A program made the translations under genes and the position numbers. A DNA stretch of 64,000 nucleotides. Source: Saccostrea cucullata. Lineage: Eukaryota. The DNA lies in the NCBI RefSeq assembly GCF_032062105.1, contig NW_026928016.1, forward strand, positions 1-64,000, written 5' to 3'. The notes beneath the pieces were generated by a model. That model was given only the letters and a program-made list of their open reading frames with translations. It was not told the DNA's origin and did not search any database. Of the stretch, positions 7,729 through 17,929 are shown piece by piece. Numbering within the stretch: position 1 is the stretch's first letter; each line of letters begins with the position of its first letter.

Positions 7729-10700
7729 ATGATGATCTGGGAGAATTTTATTTTATATGGACCATACTTAATTAGTGCTATAGTGGTTCTCTTTACTTAT
7801 TATTTCTTGAAAAACCGTGGACTTCCCCCGGGACCCTTTAGATGGCCTTTTATTGCTGCCATTTCAAATGACAAAAAGTTGATGATCTTTTTGAGGAATT
7901 TAGAAAGAAAATATGGCAGCATATTTCGATTTAGATTAGGAACTCAACACGTGACAGTGGTTGGTGGTCTTGAAAATATTAAACAAGTCCTTGAAGAAGA
8001 GTCCCTACAACCTTACCGAGAGTGGTCAACGTTTATCACACCAATCCAGCCTTCTCAAGGTCAGACAGTTTTCAGTATTTTAGATCTCAAGTTGAGTTTT
8101 ACTCTCGACAAAAAAAGAGTACACTGAAGATGAGTTATCAGTTATTATCTTTGTGGCAAAATTCAGCTTATTTTTGCAACTGAAATTGAAGGCATGAAAT
8201 ATTAAGTTTCTCATTGTGAAAACTATATAAGTACATGTATCATACAATGCGCACTAATTTTGCCTTTATTATTAAGTAAGCAAGCTATACAGAAATGTCC
8301 TCTACCAGTTATCCTTTATAAACAAGCTACACGACATTCACCATGAACCACATGTACTTTTGATTTAATTTCACATTTAAGTATATTAGTAAACATTTTT
8401 AGTGTACTGCATACAGTTTTTGTTGAAGATTGTTTGCAATAATAAATTTTGTCCTCATGAATCTTAATGTAATGACAATATTGCTCGTTTATCAGTTTTA
8501 CCAATGCCATTTTCTATGACTTTTTTACTGAATTTAAACAATTATGTTCCCCAAACGGAGTTTGGGAACATATTGTTTTTACTCGGTTTCTTATTATTAT
8601 TATTATTATTATTATTATTCTTTTTTTTCTTCTTTGTTCTCCAGTACTTTTTTTGTCCGCGAGTGTTCTCAGAAACTGTTCACCCAACTGAGCTAAAACC
8701 TTTTTAGGGTTAATAGGTGTGTAGTGTAGGTGTGCAACACGAAGGTTATTTTGCGCGCATACTCATGCACGTGCGGGCGCGTGAAATGAGTGAAATGACG
8801 GATATACTTTATATAGCCATAACTTTAACATTTTTTGATCAAATATTTTAAAACTCATTTAATAAGGATATATTTATAGTGTAGATAATGTGACACTGTC
8901 AAATTAGCACGAACTCACGCGCATGCACGTGCGCTTCGCTCTGATTGGCTGCAACAAAAATCTCAATATCTTTTCTGTTTTTTGACGAAATGCTATGAAA
9001 TTTAAAATATAGGCATACTTTAGGATGTACTACAATATGATATATAACAATTGTCATGTAAACACGCGCATGCACGTGCGCTTTAATCTGATTGGCTTAA
9101 ACTTTAAATGGCTATAACTCCCTTGTTTTTCAACGAAACAGTATGGAATTTAGAACATAGACAAACATTATGGACTGCGACAAGGAGGTATGGTCGTCAT
9201 GCACATGCATGCACGTGCATGCACGTGTGCTTTGCTGTGATTCGCTGAAACATAAATCGGAATATTTTATTTTAATTTTTGACGAAATGCTTTAAAATTT
9301 TAAACATAATCATGCATTAGGATGTCCTACAACATGATATATAACAGTTGTCATGAAAACATGCGCATACACGTGCTCTGCAATCTGATTGGCTTAAACT
9401 TAAAATGGCTATAACTTCCTCGTTTTTCAACCAAACAGGATGGGATTTAGAACATAGACAAACATAACAGACTCCTACAAGAAGATACAGTCGACATGCA
9501 CATGCATGCACGTGCGTGCACGTGAAATGAGCAAAATTACAAATACACTAGATTAAAACGTATTTTTTAATACTTTTGGATAAAACGCTGTAATTTCTAG
9601 TATACAAATAGTGTAGACAAGATGATATGGTCATTACGCACATGCATTCAAATGCGCATGCGTGCAATGCATAAATTTGAATATACTGAATATACTTCTG
9701 GGAAAACATTGTTATAGTCTAAAAGGCATAGAGTTCGTCCTATTTAAATGAAGGTTACAGGGAATAAGGCACCAAAAGGGAGTTGGGGAGCGTTTGGGGA
9801 ACATCTGTAACGGTTCCCGTTACAATTATTTGTACATGTATTCAATACGGCTAGGTGGTCATTGCAATTTTGAGACATTTTAAATCTTTTGGAATAGGAA
9901 AACAAATTGTATTTTTAAAGAGTAGGATTTTTTAGTAAAATTATGCTTCGAACATTTATTTCTTAAATAAAAAGGTATGACTAGGAAAATTATTAACTAT
10001 TTTAAACAGATTTCTTGGGTAATATGTTGTCCACCTAGTCTCCTTTAAACTTTAAAATACGGTATTTATCTAACTGAAGTCACCTTGGCCTTATACACAA
10101 TCAGTTCATTTTATGGTATTCACTTTATCCGGTTTTTGATAGGCGGCTCTTTACTGGGAAACGCCGAGCTTTGGAGAACTTTGGAAAAACTGACAGAGGA
10201 GACAGTGGATAACTTTTTGAAGGAGGGGTCCTCTTTAGAGACGACAATTCTAGAGGAGTTCCGATTCCTTCACTCGGAACTTTCAGCAGAGAAATGTCGC
10301 CAAATCAGCATGCTGAATATGATTAGAGAAGCTGTTTACAACATTGTATCGGCTATTACGATTGGAGAAAGGTTTCACAACATTCATTTACAAGCATGTA
10401 TTCTTTGAATAAAGGAAAATATTTCTCTCCAGTAAAAACAAGAGTAAATAAATTGTTTTAGTGAAAAAAAAGAAAACCAAGCTTATTCTTTAAACTGATT
10501 TAAGGTAGGATTCTTTTCTGGTTTCTGACTAGATGATATATTCAAAGTACATTTGCCTATATGTCTTATATATTTAGATGTAAGAGATTTAAAGGACCAT
10601 ATTTTCTTTCCTCATCACAATTGTACAACTTTAAATAGAAATAGTAAACCGCATTTGAAAACTAGCAGGGACTATATTTTTGGCGGAATGGTGGCGTATG

Positions 10701-16700: not shown

Positions 16701-17929
16701 ATTATTATGGGCAGGCTGTTGGAAATCCTTTTAACTTTATTATTGCTTAATCAGAACAAAAGATACAACAGATATTGTGAAAGCAACACATGATGCAAAA
16801 GAATGTATTCAAATCCTTTATTTACTGCAGCAGTGTAAAATGCTTAGCAATACTATCAAGCTCGAGTCAGACAGTTTTTTTTCGAAGTGTTTTCAAACTG
16901 GAACAAAAAATACGTGCATCAAAGAATCATTAATTTGATCAGCAATAAGTTCAATGCAATTGTTGATGTCTTGGGTCCCTACGATGTCCATTGTATCATT
17001 GTTTCATTTCTATGCTCTAGAAAAATGCCGTCGTATTATTGAGAGATCGAGCTAACAATTCAATTTTCAGCCATCATTTTAATCGTCAGATTTAAATTAC
17101 GCCAGATTTCAGTCTTGTAAGAAAGTAAAGTTATAAATCTTATTCACAGTACCATACGGATACCCTTATAAAGTATCATCAGAATTAGAGGTTGGGGATT
17201 ACAGAGTTCCCAGTGGAGACCTACTTCTACTAAACGTACAATCTTGTCACATGGATTATACGTACTGGAAACGCCCCTCGGAATTCCGACCAGAAAACTT
17301 TATGGATTCTGATGGAAAACTTATCCGTCACGAAGCATTCTTGCCGTATGGACTGGGTAAGATGTTGAAAATTGGAGGCTAAAGGTTAAACATCTTTGTT
17401 CACGTATGAAAAATTTTGCTGAAACAAAAGTAATTTCCAAATAAAATCAAATTAATCAATTTCAGGAAATCTTTTGGACAAAACTTGACAAAAATTGTCT
17501 TTTAATCTGACAATTTTATAAAGGAATAATGGAAATTTTCAGTTCGGGTTGTCTCTCTTATAAGAGGGTCAATGAACGTTTACAGAAAAATTGTCTCTGT
17601 ATTTAAATTGAAAAATAAAAAAGAGGTATTATTTAAATTTAGTTTGATTCCAGTTATTTTTTTTTTTTTGGAACAAAATATTCAACAAAAATAATATACC
17701 GGTATTTATGGCTTTATTTTGTAACTCTATCTTTTCAGGGCGTCGAACGTCCAACTTTAACAGTTTCACGGACCAAATTTTGTTTCTCCTTATGACGAAC
17801 ATAATCAACAAATTTGACCTTCGAGCACCGGAAGATAATCCAAACCCTTCGCTAACAGCAGAAGATAGCTTAATAAGATATCCCAAACCTTTCCACGTGG
17901 TTCCATACCCCACAAAAGAGGGGGAATAA
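7729..17929 (+). CDS. Cytochrome P450-like protein (clan 2-like, 488 aa) lacking the heme-ligating cysteine
   Basis: Exons 7729-8059, 10143-10371, 13991-14114, 14247-14397, 14532-14671, 15467-15560, 17150-17356, 17739-17929. All introns are GT-AG, phases are consistent, and the 1467-nt frame has no internal stop. Motifs: N-terminal TM anchor, LPPGP, KYGSIFRFRLG, I-helix LFICGCEPT, EAQR (ExxR), WKRPSEFRPENF, heme loop FLPYGLGRRTSNF. Confidence 0.88.
8540..9832 (+). mobile_element. Helentron-associated non-autonomous element (HINE-like) in CYP intron 1
   Basis: Sub-TIR GTTCCCCAAAC at the 5' end and GTTTGGGGAAC near the 3' end, (TAT)n microsatellite, internal tandem repeats rich in GCATGCACGTGC, and 3' hairpin TGTAACGGTTCCCGTTACA. 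Confidence 0.7.
12730..13420 (-). mobile_element. 3' fragment of an RTE-clade LINE, interrupted by a SINE
   Basis: The minus strand encodes degenerate RTE C-terminal motifs (PDTISN, IDIKKRKWGWIGHTL, ITKQALEWNP, FTWTQL..IAQ) and ends in a short repeat tail ATCAAGTAAATCAAGTGA. Confidence 0.7.
12955..13247 (-). mobile_element. tRNA-derived SINE (same family as 6379) nested in the RTE fragment
   Basis: Reverse-complement match to the core ACACGGGACCTCGGTTTATACGG and to the tail TTGATTGATTG..GTTGTTTAACGTCC. Confidence 0.8.
15587..16544. mobile_element. Non-autonomous DNA transposon, IS3EU-like, in CYP intron 6
   Basis: Long TIRs TATGGAACGCCAAATTAACATATATTCAAATATTTGTACCTATC... and a 6-bp TSD CAACAG (15581-86, 16545-50). 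The interior is packed with about 20-nt TACCTATCTTCAA subrepeats in both orientations. TAY..RTA termini with a 6-bp TSD fit IS3EU. Confidence 0.8.

Follow-up and report, generated by a model that had tools for sequence, protein, structure and literature searches.

What becomes of a cytochrome P450 when the cysteine that ligates its heme is gone and the gene stays whole? A P450-like gene on the + strand of a 64,000-nucleotide stretch of the oyster Saccostrea cucullata (contig NW_026928016.1, positions 1 to 64,000; hereafter the window) raises this question, as its axial-ligand codon specifies serine. The axial Cys is treated as obligatory, and animal genes lacking it are usually filed as pseudogenes or given automatic names. 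Our analysis favors, with somewhat better than even confidence and from sequence comparison, a heme-free P450-fold pseudoenzyme anchored in the endoplasmic reticulum (ER), from which the Cys drifted out after heme anchoring was lost. The oyster gene is thus probably an animal P450 now working without catalysis.

The gene model itself is secure. Eight exons, all bounded by GT-AG sites, were spliced by script into 488 codons and a stop; the product is 100% identical to RefSeq XP_062614444.1 (P0009 in our set; named "cytochrome P450 2U1-like" by NCBI), and the window contains no N. A preliminary description of the locus had proposed the same eight exons with canonical splice sites and an unbroken 488-codon frame, a Ser codon (TCC) at 17750-52 with no Gly after it, WRTLE at 10172-86, an intact ExxR and a Pro-Tyr at the propionate contact, all of which we recovered at the same positions. 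It also correctly recognized the I-helix motif CGCEP, but the span given, 14573-84, starts at the second residue of a motif that begins at 14570. A candidate extra exon at 13749-13860 was rejected, having stops in all frames and no counterpart in spliced contigs, as were alternative donors for exons 4 and 6, which break the frame.

Two Logan contigs, L022 (SRR26159589) and L023 (SRR26159588), align to the window at 98-100% identity in eight blocks that coincide with the eight exons. Both are spliced at exactly the seven model junctions, including the exon 7-8 junction for which an RNA check had been proposed, and both read TCC at codon 430, as does the genome; their spliced state points to an RNA origin. 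Relative to the genome, one contig differs at 3 coding positions and the other at 9, and their single-nucleotide polymorphisms are not the same. Together they hold seven synonymous and four nonsynonymous distinct coding variants, one of which is Asn431Lys, making the residue beside the axial site polymorphic (Asn/Lys). Because two spliced contigs with different alleles agree, neither the junction nor the TCC codon is an assembly error, and the equal exon sizes of the orthologs likewise speak against a wrong junction. The alternative Cys-bearing last exon envisaged in the preliminary description was sought by scanning the window for the motif and by searching the genome with exons 1, 7 and 8 and with the Cys-bearing C-terminal half of the Ostrea edulis ortholog; neither approach found it. 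The genome searches, which give lower bounds, also returned no second copy, the next-best P450 matches in the genome being approximately 33-38% identical. The gene is single-copy. Read-through of intron 7 was rejected as a source of Cys, since it yields a stop and no Cys. Eleven further P450 loci of this genome were inspected, and all 11 have R-x-C-x-G, in several cases split by the same phase-1 intron; hence, exon 8 corresponds by homology to the last exon of those genes. Sequence searches were run exon by exon, with exon 8 leading to an oyster protein, P0001, and from there to public orthologs, and XP_062614444.1 was used for the Pfam, PDB, cluster and structure work.

The protein matches the PF00067 profile with 249 bits (cut-off 22.8) over profile positions 1-460 of 462; exons 1, 5 and 7 pass the Pfam P450 cut-off individually and exon 8 by itself has no match. 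The predicted fold is that of a complete P450: the model has a predicted template-modeling score (pTM) of 0.79 and superimposes on CYP2D6 with a template-modeling (TM) score of 0.79, a Z of 39.2 and a root-mean-square deviation of 3.0 over 428 residues. AlphaFold assigns the Cys loop a confidence under 50 in the S. cucullata model and in the Pinctada model alike. The best sequence matches among solved structures are CYP2B4, CYP2D6 and CYP2R1 (E 2e-50 to 6e-46), ahead of CYP21, 17 and 1. Its closest relatives are clan-2 P450s, and it shares introns with a canonical clan-2 paralog (G000:C416), so that a clan-2 placement holds by relatives and introns, whereas our small tree does not fix the position of the family inside the clan. 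The paralog (L019 3400-5430; four exons, 493 amino acids), with all motifs intact, served as a control. Identity to CYP2D6 and to a lizard CYP2D-like protein is 24-26% (CYP2U1 was not among the comparisons), short of the >40% to named members that marks family CYP2. By these sequence measures the gene product is a P450-like protein of clan 2 and not of family CYP2, and the NCBI name is a similarity label.

For the heme site, residues were mapped onto CYP2B4 by alignment and tabulated for ten family members against canonical P450s, using the functional roles ascribed to the CYP2B4 residues, its presumed reductase contacts among them. Where FxxGxRxCxG has its axial Cys, the oyster protein has Ser430, with Phe at Cys+2. 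The acid and alcohol pair of the I helix, (A/G)Gx(E/D)T, retains Glu295 and has Pro296 for Thr, as is the case in 10 of 10 family members. The propionate contacts (B' Arg, WxxxR, β1-4 His/Arg and Cys-2 Arg) do not survive as a set: Trp121 and Arg428 are retained, while Tyr96, Glu125 and Tyr363 stand in place of the others. Three of the five propionate anchors are replaced, although Arg97 may substitute for the B' Arg. In contrast, the K-helix ExxR and the meander persist, with E349, R352, P404 and F407 invariant. The PENF found in place of PERF is where it was first reported, but it cannot be counted as erosion as it had been, because the active CYP2B4 (PGHF) and CYP2D6 (PEHF) also lack that Arg. 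The consequences of lacking the thiolate, the catalytic Thr and several reductase-face charges are established P450 chemistry, and judged from these residues a normal monooxygenase function is excluded.

Cys292 (14570-72) is private to S. cucullata, the residue being Ser in the other oysters, including S. echinata, and Ala or Gly in Pinctada and scallops; it occupies the I-helix position of CYP2B4 Ala298, which lies above the heme in that enzyme. Being absent from S. echinata, it is not a general compensation for the missing axial Cys. This bears on the proposal that heme is held by some other ligand, for instance Tyr361 or the distal I-helix Cys292 or Cys294. Tyr361 and Cys294 are invariant among oysters and Cys292 would be suitably placed, but with Cys292 confined to one species, Leu at position 294 in scallops and the propionate anchors mostly lost, the prospect is very slim.

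Comparison with orthologs indicates when these features were lost. Orthologs are present in S. echinata (86% identity), O. edulis (71%), two oyster entries, P0001/P0013 (68%), Crassostrea virginica (65%), Pinctada (41%) and scallops (31-34%); the sister position of P0001/P0013 to C. virginica in the tree suggests that they are probably Magallana. The four genomic orthologs, when spliced, have the same eight exons and intron phases, and the ten family proteins form one clade (support 100/99) whose branching order matches the species. The scallop-oyster split is Palaeozoic. No mussel or clam orthologs turned up in searches that were word-limited and so do not show absence. Synteny holds in 5 of 5 genomes inspected: the P450-like gene is followed by a C-type lectin gene on the opposite strand, which lies at about 22.8-25.2 kb of the window and recurs in S. 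echinata, C. virginica, Pinctada and Mizuhopecten, and O. edulis has a DNA match to that lectin gene. Two C-type lectin genes in fact lie 3' of the P450-like gene, at 22.8-25.2 kb (-) and 26.1-29.0 kb (+), and the order P450(+), lectin(-), lectin(+) is common to the window, S. echinata and Mizuhopecten, a micro-synteny retained from scallops to oysters. We treat these neighbors as a synteny marker and do not take them as a functional link.

Instead of the coordinated loss in this copy that had first been supposed, the family displays a stepwise one. In a first stage, seen in all members including scallops, the catalytic Thr is Pro within an invariant G-x-E-P-T, the Cys+2 Gly is Phe or Tyr, the C-helix Arg is gone and the L-helix Arg of the reductase face is Asp; scallops and Pinctada retain the Cys and four heme contacts, namely the B' Arg, the C-helix Trp, the β1-4 His and the Cys-2 Arg. 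A second stage, common to all oysters, comprises the loss of two residues from the B-B' loop, with Tyr at the B' Arg position, Tyr363 for the β1-4 His and Tyr361 at a heme-adjacent aliphatic site, the three tyrosines being invariant among oysters. The C-helix Trp is missing in Ostrea, Crassostrea and P0001/P0013. The O. edulis ortholog (L024 10018-10040) retains the Cys, has Ile at the Cys-2 Arg and lacks both the C-helix Trp and Arg; all its canonical propionate contacts are gone, save possibly Arg97. The third stage is confined to Saccostrea, with an axial codon TCC (Ser) in S. cucullata and ACT (Thr) in S. echinata; it is TGC or TGT (Cys) in Ostrea, Crassostrea, P0001/P0013 and Pinctada. 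The Cys loss is hence shared with the sister species, as Thr rather than Ser, and not with the seven other sampled taxa. The shortest path would be a single loss in the Saccostrea common ancestor via a Ser codon. This distribution of the losses weakens a P411-like reading and indicates an old atypical lineage.

To gauge constraint we fitted a GY94-type codon model (F3x4, own script, converged from two parameterizations) to 483 codons of six oysters. The ratio of nonsynonymous to synonymous substitution rates (dN/dS) is 0.163 overall. The Saccostrea stem has 0.154, the two Cys-less tips have 0.201 and all other branches 0.156. On the Cys-less tips it is far below 1 (p=8e-23; p=0.17 against background), so the protein has been maintained following the loss of Cys. 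The idea that the gene is recently dead in S. cucullata, or decaying with its reading frame intact by chance, draws on this branch having the highest dN/dS (0.25; p=0.08 against the rest) and on four amino-acid variants in one allele. It is largely refuted, and we give it hardly any credence: the branch is itself below 1 (p=3e-4), both Saccostrea species, separated by a synonymous divergence (dS) of about 0.39, are Cys-less with reading frames and all splice sites intact, and the full-length spliced contigs carry seven synonymous against four nonsynonymous variants. The preliminary description's view of a selected gene rather than a random pseudogene is thereby borne out; the Cys-keeping orthologs that it had allowed for do exist, but this copy is neither untranscribed nor neutral.

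Within the gene, the site groups were picked after the alignment was seen, from few species and without a canonical-ortholog control. With that proviso, the Cys loop (residues 427-433) has a dN/dS of 0.43, above the gene mean (p=0.002) and below 1 (p=0.001), the seven canonical heme-contact sites have 0.37 (p=0.024), and the oyster-specific or family-specific replacement motifs have 0.04. Sites 427, 429, 431 and 436 are among the faster ones. The near-zero dN/dS of "fold residues" is partly circular, the sites having been chosen from invariant columns, and was not used as evidence.

These observations can be ordered into a tentative history. The scallop-oyster ancestor would have lost features of oxygen activation and reductase docking (Thr to Pro, Cys+2 Gly to Phe, the C-helix Arg, and L-helix Arg to Asp) while still having four heme contacts and the Cys. 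Along the oyster stem, now-fixed tyrosines would have taken over at the B' Arg, the β1-4 His and the residue two before it, filling or reshaping the heme site. Once heme was no longer anchored, the Cys loop would have relaxed, and in Saccostrea the Cys would have drifted to Ser and then Thr with selection elsewhere unchanged. The retained fold would carry a non-catalytic role, most likely either holding a lipid or sterol-like ligand in the remodeled pocket or binding a partner enzyme in the ER membrane, comparable to the bacterial PDGAF proteins; the conserved anchor, fold, E-F and G-H segments and the new tyrosines suggest such ligand or partner binding. A heme-free state seems the most likely because three of five propionate anchors are replaced, aromatics are fixed at the site, the loop is relaxed and selection has not shifted; the absence of a detectable dN/dS change with the Cys loss is what would be expected if the Cys was already dispensable. 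That heme anchoring was lost before the Cys is supported by O. edulis, which has the Cys and lacks the Cys-2 Arg and C-helix Trp.

Several points weigh against a heme-free protein. The hydroxyl present in both Ser and Thr could serve as an iron ligand, and Trp121, Arg97 and Arg428 are all still present in Saccostrea. Three other oyster lineages have kept the Cys over about 1.8 dS; at codon 430 of these Cys-keeping oysters constraint beats neutrality by about 2.9 log units, but does not exceed that of an average site. The loop dN/dS test includes positions that vary in normal P450s, and that tyrosines occupy the heme site is a reading of the CYP2B4 alignment.

The hydroxyl and these three residues raise the possibility of a natural animal hemoprotein with a Ser/Thr alkoxide as axial ligand, like P450-G9 or P411, engaged in non-monooxygenase chemistry, sensing or heme buffering, which we regard as unlikely, though it is the main rival. 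To our knowledge no Thr-ligated heme protein has been described. The β-hydroxyl is kept by both substitutions, the retained Trp and the two Arg occur in both Saccostrea species, Tyr363 could hydrogen-bond a propionate, and a native Ser-ligated P450 is on record (PMC11703216). Yet Ser is not conserved even inside Saccostrea, TGC to TCC is a single-base change and Ser to Thr takes one more, making these the nearest mutational neighbors, the faster sites named above flank the residue, and dN/dS shows no shift along the Saccostrea stem, the branch on which a switch of ligand would fall. That the Saccostrea protein is an animal oxygen-ligated "P411", Ser or Thr by species, alongside Cys-ligated orthologs in other oysters, is given a low probability.

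An even less probable alternative is that the Cys-keeping oyster orthologs are reductase-independent heme-thiolate enzymes (peroxide isomerases or peroxygenases of the CYP5A1, CYP8A1, CYP74 or CYP152 type), with Saccostrea alone having lost catalysis and retaining the gene for a second, non-catalytic role. CYP5A1, CYP8A1, CYP74 and CYP152 are heme-thiolate P450s without the I-helix Thr, and CYP152 likewise has Pro at that position. The Cys of Ostrea, Crassostrea and P0001/P0013, the family-wide Pro and the change of basic reductase-face residues to Asp are all compatible with this. However, all oysters are without the B' Arg, C-helix Arg and β1-4 His, O. edulis also without the Cys-2 Arg, and a loss of catalysis would have left no trace in dN/dS. 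The proposal fits scallops and Pinctada better than oysters, and by analogy the scallop and Pinctada orthologs could plausibly be modeled on such enzymes.

The features of the gene are collected in Table 1. Intron 6 harbors a non-coding insertion of about 960 bp (15586-16545) resembling a miniature inverted-repeat transposable element. Its 99-bp terminal inverted repeats match at 97% identity, its interior holds tandem units of 20-21 bp, and a direct repeat, AACA, flanks it on each side; it is not at this site in S. echinata. Elsewhere in the window, a Ty3/gypsy-type retroelement (58194-63488, +) has gag-like (PNMA) and pol (protease, reverse transcriptase, RNase H, integrase) open reading frames, its second long terminal repeat not being found within the window. 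Tandem arrays occupy 20617-22004 (168-bp unit, 8 copies) and 8916-9524 (297-bp unit, 2 copies).

Table 1. Features of the P450-like gene, in window coordinates.
Feature	Position	Strand	Content
5' leader, transcribed	7631-7728	+	spliced contigs begin at 7631 and 7654
Exon 1	7729-8059	+	aa 1-110: N-terminal membrane helix, PPGP hinge, helices A-B, B' region
Exon 1 B' site	8014-16	+	Tyr96 at canonical propionate Arg position; Arg97 adjacent
Exon 2	10143-10371	+	aa 111-187: C helix; Asp133 at canonical basic reductase-face site
Exon 2 WRTLE	10172-86	+	Trp121 retained (10172-74); Arg to Glu125 (10184-86)
Exon 3	13991-14114	+	aa 187-228: E-F region, the start of which hardly varies from Pinctada to oysters
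Exon 4	14247-14397	+	aa 229-279: G and H helices
Exon 5	14532-14671	+	aa 279-325: I helix
Exon 5 I-helix motif	14570-84	+	C292-G-C-E-P296; Pro in place of catalytic Thr; E-P-T invariant across family
Exon 6	15467-15560	+	aa 326-357: K helix; ExxR intact (EAQR 15536-47)
Exon 7	17150-17356	+	aa 357-426: meander (PENF 17290-301), first half of heme loop
Exon 7 tyrosines	17161-63, 17167-69	+	Tyr361; Tyr363 (canonical propionate His position)
Exon 8	17739-17929	+	aa 426-488 and stop: Arg428 retained, Ser430, Phe432 for Gly, Asp437 for L-helix Arg
Axial-ligand codon 430	17750-52	+	TCC (Ser); next residues Asn-Phe, no Gly
3' untranslated region	to at least 18315	+	spliced contigs

What gives the case wider interest is that one single-copy orthologous series has all stages, from Cys with four contacts, through Cys without most of them, to Ser/Thr, under similar purifying selection; it could show at what point heme becomes dispensable to a P450 and which role follows. 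Whether the protein turns out to be a conserved P450 pseudoenzyme of animals or an oxygen-ligated hemoprotein that occurs naturally in them, the outcome would be informative. In practical terms, oyster ecotoxicology lists of "CYP2U1-like" genes can contain a non-enzyme. Within the literature covered, which is incomplete, we met with no paper on this gene or its accessions, nor on any Cys-less P450 from a bivalve. Insect CYP408 members are said to be Cys-less, an unverified lead from an unrelated lineage. An intact motif is listed for CYP408A3 (PMC8389683), and PMC4229089 acknowledges exceptions to the axial Cys in the superfamily, citing Sezutsu et al. 2013. In the survey of Nguy et al. (PMC11703216), Cys is present in >99.5% of approximately 230,000 P450 hits, 301 heme-free PDGAF chaperones are set apart, and 20 non-canonical families are reported in bacteria, with one Ser-ligated structure (P450-G9, PDB 9CJG).

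Of known systems, the clan-2 microsomal P450s (CYP2B4, CYP2D6, CYP2R1 and the paralog G000:C416) are the best sequence and fold matches and have the membrane anchor, PPGP, ExxR and meander in common with the oyster protein; the paralog also shares three intron positions, including the phase-1 intron within the heme loop. Unlike them, the S. cucullata protein lacks the axial Cys, Cys+2 Gly, catalytic Thr, B' Arg, C-helix Arg and β1-4 His. CYP5A1, CYP8A1, CYP74, CYP152 and the orphan CYP20A1 are likewise without the I-helix Thr, but all of them retain the axial Cys. A degenerate I helix and an altered heme loop are described for CYP20 (PMC8110760). The PDGAF proteins (EryCII and its kin), heme-free glycosyltransferase activators, also combine a P450 fold without the axial Cys with a non-catalytic role (PMC11703216). 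They are, however, bacterial and encoded in glycosyltransferase clusters, whereas the oyster protein is animal, membrane-anchored and full-length, has Cys-bearing orthologs, and has C-type lectin genes rather than a glycosyltransferase gene as its conserved neighbors. The Ser-ligated P450-G9 (PDB 9CJG; PMC11703216) and the engineered P411 likewise have a P450 fold whose axial residue is Ser, but their heme binding is demonstrated and the reported families are bacterial; in the oyster family Ser occurs in S. cucullata only, alternating with Thr and Cys, with most propionate contacts gone. A Cys-less P450 fold is thus already known, and what appears to be new here is an animal, membrane-bound variant that can be likened to the PDGAF and Ser-ligated bacterial families while lying outside both.

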